IMG/VR virus record: IMGVR_UViG_3300048121_001678
Coordinates: 233,165-297,164 of that record
Length of the DNA stretch: 64,000 nt
Direction: 5' to 3' (one strand)
The notes under the pieces are model-generated. The model was not told the DNA's origin. It did no database searches and was given only the letters and a program-made list of their open reading frames with translations. The translations under genes were made by a program, and so were the position numbers. This document shows, one piece after another, positions 1,299 through 53,789 of the stretch. Position 1 is the stretch's first letter; every line of letters starts with the position of its first letter.

Positions 1299-1688
1299 GG
1301 GGGTGAATGGAATTGATTGGCAGGGTCAGTTGCACGGGGCACGTAGTGAGATGTTATCTATCACTTTAATCTATGATGGCAATTTTGTAATCGGCGAAAC
1401 TTTCGCAAAACTTCAGGCAGTAGGTCTCCTACGTACTGAAGAAGTAGCTGTAGCGTAAGACGTTAACAGTGAATCGGGTCGGTCAGGACATGTACCTATG
1501 AACAGAAGTCCGTTGTTGTGGTGGAAAAACGATTAAACCCTAAATTGAGTCGTACATCTATTGGTGATAGAGGATGTAAAAATTCAATCACATATTTCGG
1601 AACATTGTGAACTAATGTTGACCTAAACGTGTAGTCCTTTGTAGGTGGACTGAACAAGACGCGGGTTCGAATCCCGCCACCTCCACCA
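1299..1688 (+). ncRNA. ssrA: tmRNA; tag ORF 1393-1458 encodes GETFAKLQAVGLLRTEEVAVA*
   Basis: 5' GGGGGTG pairs with 3' CACCTCC-A-CCA with a G3.U70 alanine determinant; T-arm GCGGG-TTCGAAT-CCCGC; 390 nt; resume context gtaatc-GGC. Confidence 0.93.
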
Positions 1689-4133: not shown

Positions 4134-5015
4134 TTATAAGGACATTAACATGTCCAATAACTCTTGTTGTGGGAACATATCCACTTTATCTTTACGGGTG
4201 TTTGTGTGTGTCCACAAACCTTTAACCTTACCGTAGTATGCGTCCTCATTCCATTCGAATGCATCTGCACCTTTATCTTTAATCAATGATGGTAATCCTG
4301 CTCTAATATCAATACCGTCTCTATCACCAATCCATAATATCCACTTTCTTAACGCTTCAATTTGTTCGTCAGAATAACGATGCCACGTTTTGTGACCTCT
4401 AAATTCTTTATCAAGTGTAACTATTTGTGACTCAGCAACAGATGTTCCAGCATATGTTTTACCATTCTTAATCCATCCAAAGTTACAAACCTCAATGGCA
4501 ACTGAGTTAACGTGCATCTTTTGTGAACCATTTTTACCTAAGTGCCAACCGTAATTACCTTCAGGGAAAGCTTGTACCATTACACCGTCATATGTGTCAT
4601 CATTACCCTTTACTGATTGACCACCCAGTACAAATTCCGTGGCAACTGCACCTCTACTGTCTCTACCCCACGAATCAATACATTTATAAGGATTATTCCA
4701 ACCTGCAGTGTGGTGTAAAAATAACCATTCAGGTTTAATTGGACCTTCTTTATATTCACCCTTAGGTAAAAAATGTTGGTTTATCATCAAACCATTATCA
4801 GTGGTATAAGACTGTTCAGAATTATCTGTAGTTGCTAGACCCATTGCGTCCCAAGTTTTTGGACCTACTATCCCGTCAGAAACCAAACCATTATCCATTT
4901 GCCATTTTTTAACAGTTAACTCTGTACCTTTACCAAAAATACCATCGGTAGTTATATTGAAGAATTCTTGTAGAGTTTTCACTTCTTTACCTCTTGAACC
5001 TATTTTTAAAATCAT
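4134..5015 (-). CDS. Endolysin: peptidoglycan-binding domain plus N-acetylmuramoyl-L-alanine amidase (Amidase_2)
   Basis: LKIGSRG.EVKTLQ..DGIFG.GT..DGIVGPKTW; LHHTAG, WH.G, H(T)N..K.D zinc ligands. Confidence 0.88.
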   Translation of the reverse strand: MILKIGSRGKEVKTLQEFFNITTDGIFGKGTELTVKKWQMDNGLVSDGIVGPKTWDAMGLATTDNSEQSYTTDNGLMINQHFLPKGEYKEGPIKPEWLFLHHTAGWNNPYKCIDSWGRDSRGAVATEFVLGGQSVKGNDDTYDGVMVQAFPEGNYGWHLGKNGSQKMHVNSVAIEVCNFGWIKNGKTYAGTSVAESQIVTLDKEFRGHKTWHRYSDEQIEALRKWILWIGDRDGIDIRAGLPSLIKDKGADAFEWNEDAYYGKVKGLWTHTNTRKDKVDMFPQQELLDMLMSL

Positions 5016-34611: not shown

Positions 34612-34685
34612 GCACCCATAGCTCAGCTGGATAGAGCATCTGCCTTCTAAGCAGACGGTCTCAGGTTCGAATCCTGATGGGTGTA
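34612..34685 (+). tRNA. trnR: tRNA-Arg(UCU)
   Basis: GCACCCA/TGGGTGT acceptor; TCTGC-CTTCTAA-GCAGA; no encoded CCA. Confidence 0.93.
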
Positions 34686-34720
34686 CTGGTGAACACAACT
34701 TAGTTGTAAGTAACCTAAAC

Positions 34721-34794
34721 GGACTTTTAGCTCAGTTGGTTAGAGCACCTGACTCATAATCAGTAGGTCGATGGTTCGAGCCCATCAAGGTCCA
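34721..34794 (+). tRNA. tRNA with CAU anticodon (Ile2-like or elongator Met)
   Basis: GGACTTT/AAGGTCC acceptor; loop CTCATAA. Confidence 0.88.
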
Positions 34795-34964
34795 CGTTGT
34801 TGTATTAAATAAAAATAACCAATATCTTTATATTACAGAAAATGTAATGTATATTTGTACTACGAGAGAGAGACAGTAAAGCTGATTAAATTGAGATTAT
34901 GGTAAAGGTTAACCACTCATTCACGCAGTAACCTTGAAAGACCCGAAAACCTCTCTCTTTTAAA

Positions 34965-35037
34965 GCCTTAATAGCTCAGTTGGTAGAGCAGCACATTTGT
35001 AATGTGCGGGTCGGCGGTTCGAGTCCGTCTTGAGGCT
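34965..35037 (+). tRNA. trnT: tRNA-Thr(UGU)
   Basis: GCCTTAA/TTGAGGC; GCACA-TTTGTAA-TGTGC. Confidence 0.92.
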
Positions 35038-35114
35038 CATTAACTGAAACATACCGTTCCTTAAATACGGGTAACGGAAGACCAGGTAGAGAACATTAAG
35101 TAATCTACCAAATA

Positions 35115-35199
35115 GGAAGATTGACAGAGTGGTCGATTGTACTGGTCTTGAAAACCAGCGTACCGAAAGGTACCGTAGGTTCGAATCCTACATCTTCCG
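35115..35199 (+). tRNA. trnS: tRNA-Ser(UGA)
   Basis: GGAAGAT/ATCTTCC; CTGGT-CTTGAAA-ACCAG; long variable arm. Confidence 0.93.
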
Positions 35200-35205
35200 C
35201 AACAA

Positions 35206-35288
35206 TGGGGAGTTGAGCAATTGGTTGGCTCGACAGACTGTAAATCTGTTCCTTTTTAGGCTTGGGGGTTCGAGTCCCTCCTCCCCAA
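35206..35288 (+). tRNA. trnY: tRNA-Tyr(GUA)
   Basis: TGGGGAG/CTCCCCA; ACAGA-CTGTAAA-TCTGT; long variable arm. Confidence 0.9.
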
Positions 35289-35290
35289 CG

Positions 35291-40483: not shown

Positions 40484-41392
40484 ATGAAAAAGTTTATCTT
40501 CTTATTGTCACTATTATTGACAACATTTGTGACAAAAGCCTCTCACGTTATGGGTGGTATCATTCAAGTGGCTCAAACCAGCCAGGACTCAACATCTATT
40601 GGGTTATATATCATATCAGAATCTTTCCCTTCAATGCCGTCATCAGTATCCGTTCAAAGATGGGAAATGAACTCTCAGGGTTGGTATGACTATGATGGTA
40701 ATATTACCTTAGACATGGTGACCACAAACACACATCAGGGATTTAATACTACTAATTACGGTAGTGACTATTTAGACCTTGATTCAGGTCAATATCGTTT
40801 CATTTACACAAACTGTTGTTGGGGACAATTAAATAACTCGTCAAGCACATCAAACTCAGAAGTGGTTATTTCAGCAGATTATTGGCATGTCCCAAACAAT
40901 ACAACACCATTTATGGAACAACCTTTATGGGTAAATGTCCAATCAAATATAGTCAACTCAATGAAACCTATATGGGGTATTTTCAACTGTCACTTCACAA
41001 ACCCTGATGGAGATTCTGTGAATTTATATATGTCAGAGATTTACTCATCATATTCTAATGGTGTTTTTGTACCACAAGTTCAAACCTCAACAAATGTATT
41101 GGCAGATAACGATTCTATTACCTTTGTTGGTACTAACTTAGGAACTTATGGGTATGGGTTTCAAATTGACAAATACCGTAATGGGTATTTACTAACAACC
41201 CAAAGAATACAATGGACATTCAAAGTGGTCTCATCCACTCTCGGTATCGAAAAAAATGATATTGAAAAAGAAGTATTAGGTATTTGGGATTGGCAAGGTC
41301 GTTATATGGGAAAAGATATAAAATCACTAAATAGTGGATTACATGTTATTAGATATGATGATGGAACTACAGAAAAAAAATTTAAGTTATGA
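40484..41392 (+). CDS. Secreted protein with T9SS-like C-terminal sorting domain
   Basis: Signal peptide ending TKA-SHVMGG; C-terminal TLGIE..IWDWQGR..L.SGLHVIRYDDGTTEK. Confidence 0.7.
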   Translation: MKKFIFLLSLLLTTFVTKASHVMGGIIQVAQTSQDSTSIGLYIISESFPSMPSSVSVQRWEMNSQGWYDYDGNITLDMVTTNTHQGFNTTNYGSDYLDLDSGQYRFIYTNCCWGQLNNSSSTSNSEVVISADYWHVPNNTTPFMEQPLWVNVQSNIVNSMKPIWGIFNCHFTNPDGDSVNLYMSEIYSSYSNGVFVPQVQTSTNVLADNDSITFVGTNLGTYGYGFQIDKYRNGYLLTTQRIQWTFKVVSSTLGIEKNDIEKEVLGIWDWQGRYMGKDIKSLNSGLHVIRYDDGTTEKKFKL

Positions 41393-42562: not shown

Positions 42563-43222
42563 ATGGATTACGGAAAAGATTTTAGAAAGTATGCGATGAG
42601 TGATTTTAATATGTCATCATCAACTTTGGATTCAATTGAATCATCACTAACCCCTTACATCTTAGAAGAGAGAGAGATGAGGGTAACACAAATGGATATA
42701 TTCTCTCGATTAATGAGAGACCGACTATTGTGGGTTGCTGGACCAGTAAATGACCATATGTCAACAATGGTTCAAGCGCAACTTATGTATTTAGACTCTG
42801 TAGATAACATGCCAATTACGATGCACATTGACTCACCAGGTGGTTCAGTAAAATCAGGATTGTCTATGGTCGATGTAATGCATTATATCAAATCAGATAT
42901 TGCTACGGTAAATACTGGTATGGCTGCGTCAATGGGTTCAGTACTATTAGGTGCAGGTACAAAAGGGATGAGGTCCTCACTTCGTTTCTCACGTACAATG
43001 TTACACCAATCATCAGGAGGAGCAATGGGTAATATCCAAGATGCGGAAATCACAATGAACGAATGGAAGAAGTTGAATGACATTCTATTTGGATTGTTAG
43101 GTGAGTTCTGTGGTAAAGACCCTGAGCAAGTGAAACAAGATGCCTCACGTGATTTGTGGTTGTCAGCACAAGACGCTCTCGAGTATGGTATTATTGATGA
43201 GATTGTTAAATCCAAAAAGTAA
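42563..43222 (+). CDS. clpP: ATP-dependent Clp protease proteolytic subunit
   Basis: DIFSRLM.DR, IDSPGGSV, AASMG, MLHQ, RD.WLSA..A.EYGIID; TATATTTG at 42533-42540. Confidence 0.95.
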   Translation: MDYGKDFRKYAMSDFNMSSSTLDSIESSLTPYILEEREMRVTQMDIFSRLMRDRLLWVAGPVNDHMSTMVQAQLMYLDSVDNMPITMHIDSPGGSVKSGLSMVDVMHYIKSDIATVNTGMAASMGSVLLGAGTKGMRSSLRFSRTMLHQSSGGAMGNIQDAEITMNEWKKLNDILFGLLGEFCGKDPEQVKQDASRDLWLSAQDALEYGIIDEIVKSKK

Positions 43223-43245
43223 TATGTAGAATATACATATTACCT

Positions 43246-43278
43246 AAAAACCCCCATCTATTAAGGTGGGGGTTTTTA
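43246..43278. terminator. Bidirectional terminator between clpP and the rhodopsin operon
   Basis: aaaaaccccc-atctattaaggt-gggggttttt; same family as hairpins near 4089, 53038, 53516 and 55569. Confidence 0.75.
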
Positions 43279-43302: not shown

Positions 43303-43941
43303 CTATTTTTTATCTCCACTTGTTGCATGTTTAACACCCATTATTGTACCAATAATACTAAAGGAGTTTGTTAATAAAATACCAAAAAGGTTTGACCATG
43401 TTGATTCAATAATTTTAGAATCATGACCCTTTAATAATACAAAGACATACAAAGCAGTTGTTATAACACCAACACCCATTATTACCCAAAGGGCCACCTT
43501 AACTATATTACTCATTAATTCGGTTTGTGTTTTCTTTTGAAGTAGCGAAAGGTCGGTTTCAGCAAGTTCCTTAGCTTGTTCCGCTTTATATCTTAACCTA
43601 TCCGCTTCTTCCCTAGACTTCTCAGATTCTTCTTTAGACTTAGTAGCTATTTCTGCAGAATCAATAGCTTCTTTTAGTGCTGTTTCTAATTGTTTGTTAA
43701 CTCTAATATTTTCTTTTGCTGCTGATTCTAAGTCTTTATTTTGAGACTGAACCTGTTTGGTAACCTGTAAACGTTTCTTTCTTGCAGTAACATCTCTGTC
43801 CTTACATGTTTTTAGATAGTCTACTAATTCTTTATCATCCTTTTCTGCTTTTAGAACTTTTAATATATTTCCTTCCAAATATATTTTCTTCTCCTTAGCT
43901 AAGGTCAACAATACTTTTTTTACTTCAGGAGTTATTATCAT
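43303..43941 (-). CDS. Coiled-coil protein with two C-terminal TM helices
   Basis: K/E-rich heptads then VALWVIMGVGVITTALYVFVLL and LFGILLTNSFSIIGTIMGV; ATGA overlap with the rhodopsin stop. Confidence 0.75.
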   Translation of the reverse strand: MIITPEVKKVLLTLAKEKKIYLEGNILKVLKAEKDDKELVDYLKTCKDRDVTARKKRLQVTKQVQSQNKDLESAAKENIRVNKQLETALKEAIDSAEIATKSKEESEKSREEADRLRYKAEQAKELAETDLSLLQKKTQTELMSNIVKVALWVIMGVGVITTALYVFVLLKGHDSKIIESTWSNLFGILLTNSFSIIGTIMGVKHATSGDKK

Positions 43942-44519
43942 TTTTCATATTTTGTGTGTATGTAAATAGCCACACCTAATTTTGCAGTTAAATCAACTAA
44001 AGAATACAATATAATTGTCATTAATGAATCAGTTGTAAAATATACTATAGGGTAAAACATCCATAAAGTTAATACTCCAATGAAAAAATTTAATTGTTTT
44101 TTCTTTATTCCATTTGATAAACTCACGAAAGTATAGATTGAAAACATGGTTCCTATGAAACCACCCAAGACTTTGGGTATAATAGATGCTTCACCTAAGA
44201 ATCCAAACAACAACATACCCAACATACAGAGTATTGAAGATAATAAGGTTCCAATTTTTTTGTGTTTTACTTTTAAGAAAGTATACATTTGATATATTAG
44301 AATAGGTACGGTAAATGTCCAGTCTAAGTATCTCCATGTTCTTAAATTCGTAGTATCATCAATACCAAATAAATGTGACATTAACATATATGATACACCA
44401 GCAATCAATAATATTATTGATGACAATTTTGACTGTAGTGAATTTAATGAGTTGTACCCAAAATAAAGTCCTCCACCTAAAAATAATAAGGACGTAGTGA
44501 ATAAAATATCGCTAATCAT
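43938..44519 (-). CDS. Compact type-1 microbial rhodopsin (DTQ motif)
   Basis: 7 hydrophobic helices; helix C RYLDWTFTVP, helix D MLLFGFLGE, helix F W.FYP, helix G DLTAK with Lys180. Confidence 0.9.
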   Translation of the reverse strand: MISDILFTTSLLFLGGGLYFGYNSLNSLQSKLSSIILLIAGVSYMLMSHLFGIDDTTNLRTWRYLDWTFTVPILIYQMYTFLKVKHKKIGTLLSSILCMLGMLLFGFLGEASIIPKVLGGFIGTMFSIYTFVSLSNGIKKKQLNFFIGVLTLWMFYPIVYFTTDSLMTIILYSLVDLTAKLGVAIYIHTKYEK

Positions 44520-45021
44520 TTTTGTACTGTTTTAATTTATCGTTTAGTTTAATATTTTCCATTCTAAGGTTAAAGTTAACCTCCATCTGTTCCTTTATTT
44601 TTTCTTCCAAATCTTCTCTATACATTTTGGATACATCATCCTTTATTTTTTCTTGTTTTTTAGATTTGATTTTTTGGTTGATTCTCCTGATATTACTTAA
44701 CGCACTAATTGAGATGACTACCCAACCCCAATTCATGTGACTCCATGTATATGGGTCGTATTCATAGAAGTGTAGACCAATAAACAAAATGGACATAATA
44801 CCATATAGGTACGCAAATAATTTTCTCCTTTCTAATTTACTATATACCACTGAGTAAAGTGTACCAAAACCAATTAACGAGCTCAGAATACCAATATACC
44901 AAAGGTGATAATTTTCCATCATCAACACAGCAGGGGCAAAGATGAACCAAATTAAACCTTGAATAATTTCAGTAGGTTCAGAATCGTGGTAGGTTAAGAT
45001 ATGTCCTAGTTTTTTTATCAT
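44512..45021 (-). CDS. 4-TM membrane protein with C-terminal coiled coil
   Basis: Hydrophobic residues ~20-110, then K/E/Q-rich helix; overlaps both neighbours. Confidence 0.75.
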   Translation of the reverse strand: MIKKLGHILTYHDSEPTEIIQGLIWFIFAPAVLMMENYHLWYIGILSSLIGFGTLYSVVYSKLERRKLFAYLYGIMSILFIGLHFYEYDPYTWSHMNWGWVVISISALSNIRRINQKIKSKKQEKIKDDVSKMYREDLEEKIKEQMEVNFNLRMENIKLNDKLKQYKND

Positions 45022-45455
45022 TTGTACACTTTAAATGGGTTTGTTTTATTTTTATACCCTTCATAGTCTTCCCTAAAATCCTCTAAACGTGGTTCAATGT
45101 CGTCTGATTTTATAATCCAAAATTGAGCACCAGCATTTTTTGCCTTCTCTATTTCTTGATTATCATCAGATGATGATATGATTCCTATCACACATCCATT
45201 TCCGTATTCATGATTTATTTTATGGACCATCTCAATTCCATTGAATGAAGAACCTATGATATTCAAATCAACAAACACACATTCAGGACGTTCATGGTTC
45301 ACGTCATCTGGAAACCATTCTTTGAACTTTTTATCTGCTTCATCTGAAGAGTTTAACGCCTCTAACGAAAGAGTAATATCTAAGATACTACACGCATCTT
45401 CGAAGACCAAGTGGAAAAGGTCTTCATCATCAATTAACATTATTGAATTAATCAT
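45018..45455 (-). CDS. Single-domain response regulator (receiver)
   Basis: IMLIDD (D9/D10), VFVDLN (D63), ISSS, IIK. Confidence 0.9.
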   Translation of the reverse strand: MINSIMLIDDEDLFHLVFEDACSILDITLSLEALNSSDEADKKFKEWFPDDVNHERPECVFVDLNIIGSSFNGIEMVHKINHEYGNGCVIGIISSSDDNQEIEKAKNAGAQFWIIKSDDIEPRLEDFREDYEGYKNKTNPFKVYK

Positions 45456-45462
45456 TTCTATA

Positions 45463-46713
45463 TTATTTAATTTTAATCTTTATTTTAGTTCCGTAATTTA
45501 ATTTTTCGGAGGTAATAGAAAAGTCGTGCTCTTGTAGGATTGCAATACATATATTCAGACCTAACCCACTACCACTTTCCTTTTGGTCTTTTTTTCTCGT
45601 ATAAGGTTTAGACAGTTCTATAAACTCTCTTTGACTCATACCTCGTCCATTATCTTGTATAATTAAAGTTTCTTCGTCTTCCATATAAATCATTACCGAC
45701 TTTGTAGGACTATCATTATATTTCAAACCGTTACGAATTAAATTATCTATTGCTGTACAAAATAATGGTTCATTCACATCAATCTCAGGTAAATCATCAA
45801 TCACCACCTGTTTCACATAAGAAGTTGAGGATAGATAGTCTCTCAAAATTTCTTTGAGGTTGGATTTTGTTTTTTCTAACTGAACTTCTTGCTTTACTAA
45901 GTTTGTGAACTCTTTCACACCGGAATACACTTTCTGAGTATGTTTCAAACCTTCTTCCAACATCTTAAGTGGAGAATCTATTTTTAATTCTTTAATTTGT
46001 TCATCAGAAATTCTTCTTTTCAAAGACCTTAATCCTCTTGGCATATAAGTATTAATACCTGAATGCATATCGTGTCTAAGGATTTTAGCTGCATGTTCTA
46101 AATAAGAGTTTTTTTGGTTCAACACCACTTCGGCATCATGTTGTGAAGTAATATCCGTTGCTATTTTTAATATGGTAGTATACTCACCATCCTCATTTTT
46201 AATAGGTGTATAATTACCAAATAACCATTTTTTGGAACCGTCTTTTGCAACCCTTTCGAATTCACCATTCACACTCTTACCCTGTCTCAAAGTATTCCAA
46301 AAGTTTAAATACTCCTTACTTTTAGCATATTCAGGTGTGACCATATTACTATGATGTTTGTTAACTATATTTTTTTCAGGACATCCCATAATATCACAGA
46401 AATTGTCATTAGCTGAAATTATATTCCCGTCAATACCCATAATCACCACTAAATTTGATTTACTGATAGCATCTAGTTGTGCATTTACGTTTTCTTCTTT
46501 GAGTCTGATGTTTTTTAAAAGCTCACTAATAACCATAAAGAAGGGTGGCATAAACGCAATTACACAAGCGTATCCAAATTGTGCTAAAAACATACTGTTT
46601 TCACATATACCAAAAACAATACAAGATTGCACAGAGAAAAACGCAAACATAATTATTGCCGCAATTCCCAAAGATATCTTGGACTTAATTGATAATAGTG
46701 AAACCGTATCCAT
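45463..46713 (-). CDS. Membrane-anchored PAS/PAC sensor histidine kinase
   Basis: 2 TM; PAS DG.IISAN.NF..W..L..G...GEF.RVAKDG..W..Y.PI..ATDIT; H-box RHDM; N-box DNLIRNGLKY; G1 DNGRG; G2 GSGLGL. Confidence 0.93.
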   Translation of the reverse strand: MDTVSLLSIKSKISLGIAAIIMFAFFSVQSCIVFGICENSMFLAQFGYACVIAFMPPFFMVISELLKNIRLKEENVNAQLDAISKSNLVVIMGIDGNIISANDNFCDIMGCPEKNIVNKHHSNMVTPEYAKSKEYLNFWNTLRQGKSVNGEFERVAKDGSKKWLFGNYTPIKNEDGEYTTILKIATDITSQHDAEVVLNQKNSYLEHAAKILRHDMHSGINTYMPRGLRSLKRRISDEQIKELKIDSPLKMLEEGLKHTQKVYSGVKEFTNLVKQEVQLEKTKSNLKEILRDYLSSTSYVKQVVIDDLPEIDVNEPLFCTAIDNLIRNGLKYNDSPTKSVMIYMEDEETLIIQDNGRGMSQREFIELSKPYTRKKDQKESGSGLGLNICIAILQEHDFSITSEKLNYGTKIKIKIK

Positions 46714-46716
46714 AAA

Positions 46717-46917
46717 TTATAACTCAGACTTTCTGAATCCACATTTACCGAAAAACCACTTTGAAGGGCAGAAACCTGTCCACACTCCTACGTTTAACAT
46801 GGCGATGACGAAAATTACGACACCCCATGATTCCAATAAAAAACCTGAAAGTAGTACCAACGACATTAGAAGGTATACCATACGTGTGTCTGTGACACTT
46901 TTTAATAAATTTTTCAT
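46717..46917 (-). CDS. YgaP/DUF2892-like 2-TM protein
   Basis: R..YL...TGFCP motif. Confidence 0.7.
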   Translation of the reverse strand: MKNLLKSVTDTRMVYLLMSLVLLSGFLLESWGVVIFVIAMLNVGVWTGFCPSKWFFGKCGFRKSEL

Positions 46918-47047: not shown

Positions 47048-47127
47048 ACTATAAATACCTTCAAATTATGGTATTTACTTTTTTTATTTTAGATTTACAT
47101 AATCTAATTATTATTCATACTTTTAAT

Positions 47128-47355
47128 ATGAATAAAACAAAAGTCTCATTAAAGAGACATATCGCAAAAACCTTAACATGGAGAATAGTTGGTACCATAG
47201 ATACAATGGTATTAGGTTGGTTAGTATCAGGAGACCCAATTATTGGTTTAACCATCGGTTCATTTGAAGTAGTTACTAAAATGGTACTGTATTTTATACA
47301 CGAAAGAGTGTGGTATAAGTATGATTATGGTGTTAAAAGAAAGGATAAAAACTAA
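47128..47355 (+). CDS. DUF2061-family membrane protein
   Basis: RHIAKTLTWRIVGTIDT..E..TKMVLYFIHERVW. Confidence 0.8.
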   Translation: MNKTKVSLKRHIAKTLTWRIVGTIDTMVLGWLVSGDPIIGLTIGSFEVVTKMVLYFIHERVWYKYDYGVKRKDKN

Positions 47356-47398: not shown

Positions 47399-48022
47399 AT
47401 GGACTGGATAAAGATTGCAGAACTATTAATAACATCACTAACGTCAATTATTATTGCACTGTTAGGTGCTGGTTATTTTAGAAAAATGACGATTAAAAAA
47501 GAGAAAAATAAATCTAAAGAGTCGTTGATGCAGCAAATTAAAAACGACGAGATTGTTCACTTATCAATTCGTGAAATAAGGAGAAGATATAACGCAGATA
47601 GAGTATATATTTGGCAATTCCATAACGGTGGGAGCTTTTATACCTCATCACCAATGCAAAAAATTTCAATTACTTACGAAAGAAACTCAGACGGGTTAGA
47701 AAGAAAGGCAGATAAAAACCAAAACCATTTAGTGTCACATTTCAACACTTTTGTTAAAGATGTTATCGACTATAATATGTATTACTCAAATATTGAAACA
47801 ATGCAAGATTTAGGGTTGAGGTCATTAGCACAATCTAATGGAACCAAATCCCATACTTCGGTACCTATTTACGATAAACTTGGTAACTTAGTTGCCATAT
47901 TATCTCTTGACTGGGTCTTTTCACTAATCCCTACAGAGTATCTTAAAAAAGACGGTGACTTCACTCAAGATTTTAAAGAGGAAATATCAAAGGATGCCGA
48001 CACATTAGATAATTATTTATAA
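47399..48022 (+). CDS. Single-TM protein with GAF-like domain; holin candidate (T4 gpt-like architecture)
   Basis: N-terminal TM; ADRVYIWQFHNG..PIYD..GNLVAILSLDW; TATTTAT at 47375-47381. Confidence 0.6.
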   Translation: MDWIKIAELLITSLTSIIIALLGAGYFRKMTIKKEKNKSKESLMQQIKNDEIVHLSIREIRRRYNADRVYIWQFHNGGSFYTSSPMQKISITYERNSDGLERKADKNQNHLVSHFNTFVKDVIDYNMYYSNIETMQDLGLRSLAQSNGTKSHTSVPIYDKLGNLVAILSLDWVFSLIPTEYLKKDGDFTQDFKEEISKDADTLDNYL

Positions 48023-53552: not shown

Positions 53553-53789
53553 CTACTCAACTTCTTTTTTCTTTGAGAAAATCTTAGTAATCCCATCAAT
53601 ACCAAAAGAACCTAAAGTGATAATTACAAATGAATTATATATAAATTCTTGTACTGGTAGGTCCTTACCTAAGAATCCAGTGATAATGTCTGCCGTGGCG
53701 AATAGTGCCATAATTGCAAATGAAGCAAATCCAACAACGTTTTTTTCGTTGATATCATTACTTTCTTTAAAAATGTCTTTGAATGCCAT
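53553..53789 (-). CDS. 2-TM membrane protein, holin-like
   Basis: Two TM helices, basic C-terminus. Confidence 0.6.
   Translation of the reverse strand: MAFKDIFKESNDINEKNVVGFASFAIMALFATADIITGFLGKDLPVQEFIYNSFVIITLGSFGIDGITKIFSKKKEVE

Follow-up and report, generated by a model that had tools for sequence, protein, structure and literature searches.

Identification of a kinase-receiver cassette around the rhodopsin gene

In a 64,000-nucleotide stretch (positions 233,165 to 297,164 of IMG/VR virus record IMGVR_UViG_3300048121_001678; hereafter the window), a 297-kb marine phage encodes a microbial rhodopsin flanked by two membrane coiled-coil proteins, which raises the question of whether these two proteins are dedicated transducers of the rhodopsin or have another role. 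An earlier note made from the sequence alone described about four TM helices plus a C-terminal coiled coil in the gene before the rhodopsin, a long N-terminal coiled coil plus two TM helices in the gene after it, no HAMP or methyl-accepting motifs in either, and a receiver without an output domain. It proposed that the two proteins link the rhodopsin to the TM helices of the kinase, or that they are the output of the receiver, for example in membrane permeabilisation or anti-holin activity. The features that the note described were confirmed by the present analysis. Its interpretation was only partly supported: the comparative evidence suggests that the two proteins belong to a widespread, undescribed phage kinase-receiver signalling cassette, usually located in the cell-lysis gene cluster, to which the rhodopsin is a rare addition. 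The two proteins are referred to below as UP and DOWN. The six-gene operon and its likely terminator are as follows.

46717-46917, minus strand: small 66-aa membrane protein with a conserved C-terminal Cys-containing motif, the first gene of the operon
45463-46713, minus strand: histidine kinase, 416 aa
45018-45455, minus strand: single-domain (CheY-like) response regulator (receiver), 145 aa, with no output domain
44512-45021, minus strand: UP, 169-aa membrane protein with about four TM helices and a charged C-terminal helix inferred to be cytoplasmic
43938-44519, minus strand: short (193-aa) seven-helix microbial rhodopsin
43303-43941, minus strand: DOWN, 212-aa protein with an N-domain (about residues 1-70), a coiled-coil stalk (about 70-140) and a highly conserved polar 2-TM hairpin (about 142-204)
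43245-43278, no strand assigned: GC-rich hairpin flanked by A and T runs, between the convergent DOWN and ClpP genes, the likely bidirectional terminator that ends the operon

The receiver, UP, rhodopsin and DOWN genes overlap by 4, 8 and 4 nt, and the terminator-like hairpin that follows DOWN has a 15-pair stem with 6 GC pairs. A scan for sigma-70 promoters found no more sites than in shuffled sequence. In RNA libraries, only short contigs were found, on the rhodopsin and receiver genes in one marine run and on the receiver, UP and kinase genes of relatives in two others; as DNA carry-over cannot be excluded, these contigs do not show expression. Both UP and DOWN are real genes under purifying selection, with dN/dS values of 0.04-0.14 against relatives (dS being saturated) and many invariant columns across homologues.

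Predicted structures of UP and DOWN

Hydropathy analysis of UP gives three strong hydrophobic segments starting at residues 19, 43 and 68, plus a weaker fourth segment at 96-111 followed by a positive cluster. The AlphaFold2 model (mean pLDDT 79.8) places helices at 16-36, 38-60, 63-86 and 96-168, so that TM4 runs on into a long helix that is 50% charged and contains no Pro or Gly. UP also carries an invariant N-terminal motif. In DOWN, the AlphaFold2 model (mean pLDDT 80.6) shows a small N-terminal unit, one continuous helix at 37-171 and a second helix at 176-208. The hydrophobic peaks start at residues 153 and 185, and residues 37-135 are 43% charged with no Pro or Gly. The hairpin is the most conserved part of DOWN: W182, I188, T191, N192, F194, S195, I196, G198, T199 and G202 are invariant down to 35% identity.

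Neither protein matches HAMP, MCPsignal or any other Pfam family above cut-off; no PF00672 match was found in either at E<=1, no match to the MCP signalling domain (PF00015) was found in Pfam or NCBIfam, and DOWN ends about 8 residues after TM2. No significant Pfam, PHROG or NCBIfam holin hit was obtained for either protein, and no antiholin or spanin model matched. NCBIfam gave only sub-threshold coiled-coil noise such as HpsJ, and the JGI label "Fe2+ transport protein B" on relatives looks spurious. PADLOC defence models gave nothing significant. Foldseek searches of both models against the PDB gave no hit at E<=0.001. A BFVD search with UP showed only weak structural resemblance to uncharacterised phage membrane proteins of ~140 aa, one of them annotated holin/anti-holin (E 0.009-0.13), and searches of the ESM Atlas by features and by shape returned only DOWN's own viral clusters and nothing for UP. 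In addition, tblastn of UP and DOWN and blastn of the locus against GenBank phages gave no match. Literature searches on phage rhodopsins, phage two-component systems, rhodopsins with holins or endolysins, and kinases with lysis timing found nothing relevant.

The kinase, the receiver and the rhodopsin

The kinase has two N-terminal TM helices joined by a very short outer loop, followed by a PAS domain (Pfam PAS_3, E 4.2e-13), an H-box (RHDMHSGINTY) and HATPase_c (E 6.8e-13). In relatives the sensor part is modular (2TM only, 2TM+PAS, 2TM+PAS+PAS or 2TM+GAF+PAS), whereas the 2-TM block and the H-box stay conserved. A LOV-type PAS domain was rejected on inspection of the sequence, since there is no NCRFLQ-like Cys motif. 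The receiver matches Pfam Response_reg at 30.6 bits against a cut-off of 30.2, and D9, D10, D63, S94-96 and K116 are invariant across 47 homologues, with a mean column identity of 82%. The kinase and the receiver have the sequence features of a two-component system. The small 66-aa protein shows a hydrophobic peak but no Pfam, PHROG or NCBIfam hit.

The gene between UP and DOWN matches Pfam Bac_rhodopsin (PF01036; E 3.7e-14, 53.2 bits against a cut-off of 24.6). It has an invariant D-T-Q motif and the retinal lysine; R60, D66, T70, Q77, W153, Y156, P157, D176 and K180 are invariant in 16 family members, as is W67. These features are those of a type-1 rhodopsin, retinal binding being inferred from sequence. 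The closest solved relatives are green proteorhodopsin (E 1.3e-8) and the viral rhodopsin OLPVRII (E 3.2e-7). Q at the proton-donor position is as expected for a non-standard pump or a sensor.

Conservation with the kinase and receiver but rarely with a rhodopsin

The families differ greatly in size: 4397 hits were found for DOWN and 240 for UP, but only 55 homologous clusters for the rhodopsin. The DOWN family comprises thousands of clusters at 90% identity, 243 clusters at 50% identity and at least 532 IMG/VR loci, and has no annotation. In the 80 IMG/VR loci closest to this DOWN, the only ones analysed, the receiver gene lies directly upstream in 76/76 and the kinase in 64/64, and a homologue of the small TM gene lies directly upstream of the kinase in 51/64, while UP is present in only 14/64 and a rhodopsin in 1/64. 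The same holds in 8 MAG contigs. In 30 UP loci, UP always lies between the receiver and DOWN; the receiver is directly upstream in 29/29, and a rhodopsin is present in 3/27.

These counts bear on the idea that UP and DOWN are rhodopsin transducers, analogous to Htr, which relay light activation to the kinase. In favor of this idea, both genes flank and overlap the rhodopsin gene, DOWN combines a 2-TM hairpin with a long cytoplasmic coiled coil, reminiscent of HtrII, and the rhodopsin has Q at the proton-donor position. The earlier note had named conservation without rhodopsin or kinase in most genomes as a result that would count against it, and this condition is half fulfilled: 63 of 64 DOWN loci and 24 of 27 UP loci lack a rhodopsin, but in the loci counted the proteins are never found without the kinase and receiver. 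Furthermore, rhodopsins occur without UP (loci L003, L006 and L098) and without DOWN (L098, L100 and L138), and no HAMP or MCP signalling domain was found. A role as rhodopsin transducers is therefore not supported as the defining role of these proteins, and this explanation is considered unlikely. On the other hand, UP could still be a rhodopsin partner when a rhodopsin is present, since UP-like genes sit beside distant rhodopsins in L100 and in L138/L140. In L100, a distant UP homologue split into a TM gene and a TM+coiled-coil gene precedes a rhodopsin and an endolysin.

Domain swaps and stalk length in the DOWN family

In the domain-swapped relatives P0348, P0350 and P0314, PAS-PAS, PAS or GAF domains take the place of the N-domain and are fused to the coiled coil plus hairpin, and no receiver or kinase is found within the sequence available in their contigs, which is short for P0350. 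Conversely, in relatives P0408, P0418, P0439 and P0445 the N-domain plus coiled coil is fused to HisKA+HATPase_c. These arrangements place the N-domain in the input position and the hairpin in the output position, with the N-domain present exactly where a receiver is. A GAF-like protein encoded in the window showed no similarity to the GAF domain of P0314. The stalk varies in exact heptad steps: the distance between the conserved motifs TKQVQxQN and DLxxLQKKTQ is 41, 48, 55, 62, 69, 76, 83 or 90 residues in 179 of 183 sequences, all equal to 6 mod 7, and one further class is 94, which is 83 plus 11.

An alternative is that DOWN, and perhaps UP, are input-side accessory proteins of an intramembrane-sensing kinase, contacting its conserved 2-TM block and feeding in membrane signals in the manner of LiaF or BceAB, while the receiver acts on a host target. 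The constant feature of the kinase is indeed a 2-TM block with a minimal outer loop, and some relatives have no other sensor domain. In addition, the receiver is unusually conserved (71-97% identity, more than DOWN), which could mean that it has a conserved host target, and the membrane partners are encoded in one operon. It is also worth noting that in L138/L140, UP, kinase and rhodopsin occur without a receiver or DOWN within 6 kb, and a kinase can apparently work without them. However, where the coiled coil plus hairpin is fused to PAS or GAF domains in contigs in which no kinase was found, it cannot be a kinase input; the N-domain accompanies the receiver (76/76) and is replaced by PAS or GAF where no receiver was found; and in signalling proteins sensor domains normally lie N-terminal to outputs. 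This alternative remains possible but is not favored. A predicted complex of the receiver with DOWN(1-110) scored 0.24 against a mark of 0.32, which counts neither for nor against binding.

Association with lysis genes

In 47/68 loci, an Amidase_2 endolysin, a holin-like 146-aa gene (a weak PF05105 match; TIGR01593 E 1.9e-6, below its cut-off) or a conserved 76-aa 2-TM gene lies within 4.4 kb, on the same strand in 144 cases against 2. The PAS-hairpin protein of locus L101 lies between an i-spanin-like gene, a lipoprotein gene, a small TM gene and a GH19 endolysin, and the GAF-hairpin protein of L141 lies 1.2-1.8 kb from GH19-like and glucosaminidase genes. Moreover, distant short rhodopsins sit immediately upstream of M15 or Amidase_2 endolysins. 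In the present genome, by contrast, the cassette is not next to the lysis genes: the endolysin is at 4137-5015 of the window, about 38 kb away, the homologue of the 76-aa gene (78 aa here) is at 53553-53789, and no homologue of the holin-like gene was found. The synteny is suggestive and is not proof of function.

It may be asked whether UP and DOWN are ordinary lysis proteins of the holin, antiholin or spanin type that merely lie beside a signalling pair. They are small phage membrane proteins with charged tails in lysis neighbourhoods, UP has the weak BFVD resemblance described above, and its tail has a weak match to an Rz-like spanin PHROG (phrog_1327, E 0.078). However, adjacency to the receiver and kinase is strict even where no lysis gene is near, as in this window, and covalent fusions of the hairpin to PAS and GAF sensors exist. 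By the positive-inside rule both coiled coils, flanked by positive clusters, are inferred to be cytoplasmic, and that of DOWN lies N-terminal without a signal peptide, which does not fit a spanin with a periplasmic coiled coil. No holin or spanin model reaches significance, and the holin-like 146-aa protein shows no similarity to UP. This explanation appears improbable. Still less likely is that the cassette serves another membrane function, such as superinfection exclusion, host takeover of motility or transport, or abortive-type membrane depolarisation. The distance from the endolysin in this jumbo phage would be consistent with it, and single-domain receivers often target motors or other proteins, but lysis-gene synteny recurs with four different endolysin types in separate lineages, and there is no match to PADLOC defence models.

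Proposed model of the cassette

Based on the strict adjacency to the receiver, the natural domain swaps, the heptad-quantised stalk and the position inside or next to lysis cassettes, the second proposal of the earlier note, that the proteins are the output of the receiver, is the better supported one for DOWN, although it rests on comparative genomics only. In the proposed model, the core cassette consists of a small TM protein, a kinase whose constant feature is a conserved 2-TM block, a CheY-like receiver, and DOWN. The cytoplasmic N-domain of DOWN would receive the signal from the phosphorylated receiver, and a rigid, register-preserving coiled coil would pass it to the polar 2-TM hairpin, which would act in the inner membrane. 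Because the cassette usually lies inside or beside the lysis genes, the hairpin most likely works as a holin- or antiholin-like element that advances or delays lysis. UP would be an optional membrane subunit that may modulate the membrane block of the kinase or DOWN. In a small minority of phages, including this one, a short D-T-Q rhodopsin has been inserted between UP and DOWN and would add light as an input. The analysis itself established the gene structure, conservation, co-occurrence, domain swaps, heptad quantisation and lysis-cluster synteny; the coupling of receiver to N-domain, the action of the hairpin in the membrane, the effect on lysis timing and the light input are inferences from them. 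The model is considered about as likely as not.

A more far-reaching possibility, which is tentative and rather unlikely on present evidence, is that a large, unrecognised group of marine tailed phages carries its own two-component "lysis clock". A membrane kinase would read membrane, PAS or GAF signals, a CheY-like receiver would dock on a new N-domain, and a heptad-registered coiled coil would switch a polar TM hairpin that gates or blocks holin action. In a few lineages a short D-T-Q rhodopsin would plug into this circuit, or sit directly before the endolysin, making host lysis light-dependent. This would be the first phage rhodopsin with a defined role and a natural light-controlled lysis switch.

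If the model holds, phages would decide when to lyse using their own sensory kinase pathway, and in some lineages using light, adding a new layer to the control of lysis timing, which is so far explained by holin/antiholin clocks and by T4 lysis inhibition. It could also bear on diel patterns of viral lysis in the sea. It would define two new protein families and a new small input domain that also occurs on cellular kinases, and would give phage-encoded rhodopsins a testable function. The PAS-, GAF- or receiver-controlled membrane hairpin could also be a compact, naturally modular part for engineered lysis switches, including optogenetic ones.

Comparison with known systems

The sensory rhodopsin transducers HtrI/HtrII of haloarchaea likewise have a 2-TM hairpin joined to a long cytoplasmic coiled coil, are encoded next to a rhodopsin, and signal towards a histidine kinase and a CheY-like receiver. 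In DOWN, however, the coiled coil precedes the TM hairpin, HAMP, methyl-accepting and CheA/CheW-binding domains are absent, no sequence or fold match exists, and about 98% of family loci have no rhodopsin; the kinase here is a membrane HisKA-type enzyme, not CheA. Phage holin/antiholin timing systems (lambda S105/S107, S21 pinholin, T4 T with RI/RIII) are small inner-membrane proteins with polar or Gly-rich TM helices and charged cytoplasmic segments, encoded with the endolysin, which set or delay the time of lysis in response to a signal. DOWN differs in carrying a cytoplasmic N-domain plus coiled coil of about 140 residues, in its proposed wiring to a kinase-receiver pair, and in having no similarity to any holin or antiholin model; no report of a phage two-component system controlling lysis was found.

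Intramembrane-sensing kinases with accessory membrane proteins (LiaFSR, BceRS-BceAB) share a kinase with two TM helices and almost no outer loop, co-encoded with small membrane proteins that probably contact it in the bilayer. Those systems have DNA-binding regulators and are cellular stress systems, whereas here the receiver has no output domain and the system is phage-borne. As in CheY-FliM, a receiver without an output domain must act by binding another protein, and the N-domain of DOWN is the candidate target, although it has no sequence relation to FliM/FliN. Finally, the viral rhodopsins of giant viruses (OLPVRII, VirChR1) are, like the present one, short virus-encoded type-1 rhodopsins, with OLPVRII and green proteorhodopsin being its closest solved relatives; the rhodopsin described here differs in that it is encoded by a tailed phage, has a D-T-Q motif and 193 aa, and sits in a kinase-receiver or lysis cassette.

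Genomic setting and gene order

The IMG/VR virus record, of which the window forms the last 64 kb, is 297,164 bp long and was judged 99% complete by CheckV. GC content is about 33%, and the sequence recurs in seawater metagenomes from many studies. ARAGORN called a tmRNA-like gene with an unusual 21-residue tag ending in VAVA (1299-1688, plus strand), as well as a cluster of five tRNA genes (Arg-TCT, Met, Thr-TGT, Ser-TGA and Tyr; 34612-35289, plus strand). On the minus strand, six genes are packed without gaps, followed by a hairpin and the convergent gene.

46917-46717, minus strand: 66-aa membrane protein (small TM gene)
46713-45463, minus strand: 416-aa histidine kinase
45455-45018, minus strand: 145-aa receiver
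45021-44512, minus strand: UP, the membrane protein gene before the rhodopsin
44519-43938, minus strand: rhodopsin
43941-43303, minus strand: DOWN, the coiled-coil membrane protein gene after the rhodopsin
43245-43278: strong bidirectional hairpin separating DOWN from the convergent ClpP gene
42563-43222, plus strand: phage-encoded ClpP protease (Pfam E 1.9e-56)

The last four genes of this series (receiver, UP, rhodopsin and DOWN) overlap by 4, 8 and 4 nt. Related phages carry ClpS, ClpB-like and HSP20 genes near the cassette. Divergently transcribed next to the cassette are a DUF2061 membrane protein (47068-47355, plus strand; E 4.7e-22) and a 207-aa protein with an N-terminal TM helix and a weak GAF-like match (47399-48022, plus strand; Pfam E 0.003, phrog_38864 E 2.3e-9). 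The close relatives L014 and L002 (L numbers denote individual loci) carry a tyrosinase gene and a CHU_C-domain gene, a Bacteroidota-type secretion tail, beside the cassette (L014:7729-12342; L002:1953-3389); a CHU_C-domain gene also lies beside the cassette in L014/L015. This hints at a Bacteroidota host. The window's 302-aa secreted protein (40484-41392) gave no family match.

The earlier note had described the two membrane proteins flanking the rhodopsin, and this description proved accurate. UP has three strong hydrophobic segments and a weaker fourth, and AlphaFold2 gives four helices, the last of which runs on to residue 168 as a 50%-charged helix. DOWN has a small N-terminal unit, one continuous helix from residue 37 to 171 and a return helix from 176 to 208, with hydrophobic peaks starting at residues 153 and 185. 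Pfam confirms the rhodopsin (E 3.7e-14), the kinase (PAS, HATPase_c) and a receiver-only regulator, and finds no HAMP, MCP or other domain in UP or DOWN; PHROGs, NCBIfam and PADLOC add nothing significant. Both genes are under strong purifying selection, with dN/dS values of 0.04-0.14.

Distribution of the families

The rhodopsin family is small, comprising 55 clusters, all about 190 aa and all metagenomic, whereas UP has 240 hits and DOWN has 4397. An exhaustive profile search found 243 DOWN clusters at 50% identity among 1.84 billion representatives, with no link to any known family, and IMG/VR holds at least 532 DOWN loci. Of these, we analysed only the 80 loci closest to the DOWN gene of the window, a sample that is biased, if anything, towards rhodopsin carriers.

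Genes found upstream of DOWN in the analysed loci, counting only loci with enough upstream sequence
Receiver, directly upstream: 76/76
Kinase: 64/64
Small TM gene: 51/64
UP: 14/64
Rhodopsin: 1/64

Similarly, in 30 UP loci the receiver precedes UP in 29/29, DOWN follows in 27/27, and a rhodopsin is present in 3/27. Eight contigs binned into MAGs of eight different phyla show the same cassettes and are probably phage DNA. The two proteins therefore belong first of all to the kinase-receiver module, and the rhodopsin is a rare insertion. The alternative that UP and DOWN are Htr-like transducers of the rhodopsin was considered against these counts, and we regard it as all but certain that the two proteins are components of the cassette and not rhodopsin-specific transducers. 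The earlier note had proposed that they could link the rhodopsin to the kinase or be the output of the receiver, and this interpretation is supported in part.

Arrangements of the rhodopsin gene

Six arrangements of the rhodopsin gene were seen.

1. Small TM gene, kinase, receiver, UP, rhodopsin, DOWN (window, L002, L004, L014, L112)
2. The same without UP, followed by an endolysin (L006)
3. Rhodopsin, kinase, receiver, DOWN (L003)
4. UP, kinase, rhodopsin, with no receiver or DOWN within 6 kb (L138, L140)
5. A split UP homologue, then rhodopsin, then an Amidase_2 endolysin (L100)
6. Rhodopsin, then an M15 endolysin, then an 85-aa 2-TM protein (L098)

The rhodopsins of L098 (1184-2231) and L100 (1145-2201) are distant members (39-41% identity) of the same short family and lie immediately upstream of an endolysin gene, Peptidase_M15_3 or Amidase_2, which is the position that a holin usually occupies; the 85-aa protein that follows in L098 is a homologue of the lysis-cassette 2-TM protein. 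All family members keep R60, D66, T70, Q77, the retinal pocket and K180, giving a D-T-Q motif, and the nearest solved relatives are green proteorhodopsin and the viral rhodopsin OLPVRII.

Domain architecture of DOWN

Three observations define DOWN, in our reading, as an input domain, a transmission stalk and an output hairpin. The first is the occurrence of natural domain swaps among proteins recovered in the exhaustive profile search (P numbers). P0348 and P0350 carry two PAS domains or one, and P0314 carries a GAF domain, directly in front of the DOWN coiled coil and hairpin, and in their contigs no receiver or kinase was found within the available sequence, which is short for P0350. The 207-aa GAF-like protein beside the cassette is not similar to the GAF of P0314. 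Conversely, P0408, P0418, P0439 and P0445, which are soluble kinases of about 340 aa, carry the DOWN N-domain and stalk in front of a HisKA+HATPase_c kinase core; one of them lies next to a MASE11 kinase gene on a probably cellular contig. The N-domain thus occupies the sensor position and, within the sequence available, is present exactly where a receiver gene is present. It would represent a new small signalling input domain shared by phage effectors and kinases. In addition, one representative (P0372) joins the DOWN N-domain, stalk and first TM helix to a FecCD-type ABC permease, which may be a real fusion or an assembly chimera.

The second observation is that the stalk is heptad-quantised. 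The distance between the motifs TKQVQxQN and DLxxLQKKTQ is 41, 48, 55, 62, 69, 76, 83 or 90 residues in 179 of 183 distinct sequences, and one further class is 94, which is 83 plus 11. Indels are therefore tolerated only if the helical register between the N-domain and the membrane is kept, as is expected of a signal-transmitting coiled coil. The third observation is that the hairpin is the most conserved part of the protein, with a polar face (N184, T191, S195, T199, G202) and invariant residues down to 35% identity, which is far more than a membrane anchor needs.

Lysis gene context

The common order in relatives, on one strand, is [76-aa 2-TM protein]-endolysin (PG_binding_1 + Amidase_2)-holin-like 146-aa protein-small TM-kinase-receiver-[UP]-DOWN. 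Of 68 loci with enough flank, 47 have one of these lysis-type genes within 4.4 kb, on the same strand in 144 cases against 2; because neighbours were detected by tblastn with a few queries, other endolysin or holin types are under-counted. The PAS-hairpin protein of L101 lies between an i-spanin-like gene, a lipoprotein gene, a small TM gene and a GH19 endolysin, and the GAF-hairpin protein of L141 lies near GH19-like and glucosaminidase genes. Four endolysin types in separate lineages make chance adjacency unlikely. An alternative reading of this context is that UP and DOWN are ordinary lysis proteins that are merely adjacent to the signalling pair.

On the other hand, in this jumbo genome the cassette has moved, and two of the corresponding genes lie far from it.

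4137-5015, minus strand: PG_binding_1+Amidase_2 endolysin (75% identity to relatives)
53553-53789, minus strand: 78-aa homologue (71% identity) of the 76-aa 2-TM protein that accompanies endolysins in related phages

No homologue of the holin-like 146-aa gene of the relatives was detected. It also remains possible that the cassette serves a membrane function other than lysis.

Kinase and receiver

The constant parts of the kinase are a conserved 2-TM block with a minimal loop and the H-box, whereas the cytoplasmic sensors are swapped between lineages (window 45463-46713 and the related loci L026, L034, L077 and L089): none (about 300 aa), PAS (416-428 aa), PAS+PAS (523 aa) or GAF+PAS (595 aa). 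This marks it as an intramembrane-sensing kinase with add-on inputs. The receiver (45018-45455) is the most conserved protein of the cassette, with 82% mean column identity and all phospho-acceptor residues invariant; its identity is 71-97% across loci where DOWN is 50-84% and the kinase 46-86%. This could point to an additional conserved, possibly host, partner. In a further alternative, DOWN and UP would be input-side accessories of the kinase, and the receiver would act on a host target.

Proposed mechanism

Based on these results, we propose a mechanism that remains an inference: the gene arrangement, conservation, co-occurrence, domain swaps, stalk spacing and proximity to lysis genes come from the analysis itself, whereas receiver coupling, membrane action, an effect on lysis time and light input are inferred. 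Matches in RNA libraries are limited to short contigs, which do not show expression. In this view, the kinase would integrate membrane and cytoplasmic cues and phosphorylate the receiver, which would engage the DOWN N-domain, although the single complex prediction gave no verdict. The coiled coil would then change the packing or oligomeric state of the polar hairpin, and the hairpin would promote or block holin-type membrane lesions and so set lysis time. UP has about four TM helices, and by the positive-inside rule its coiled coil is inferred to be cytoplasmic; it is an optional subunit that may bridge the membrane block of the kinase, the rhodopsin and DOWN. The rhodopsin would add light, either through the membrane block of the kinase (the UP-kinase-rhodopsin arrangement of L138 and L140 suggests a kinase-rhodopsin-UP unit) or directly through the membrane potential, to which holins respond. 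We consider this model as a whole about as likely as not, and that DOWN is the output of the receiver somewhat more likely than not.

Relation to known systems

No Pfam, PHROG, NCBIfam or PADLOC family, no solved or predicted fold outside the family, no GenBank phage and no paper in the literature searched covers UP, DOWN, a phage two-component system tied to lysis genes, or a tailed-phage rhodopsin. The system combines elements of known kinds, namely, two-component signalling through a single-domain receiver, holin/antiholin timing, and a sensory rhodopsin with a membrane partner. What is new is the wiring, which is built from two new protein families.
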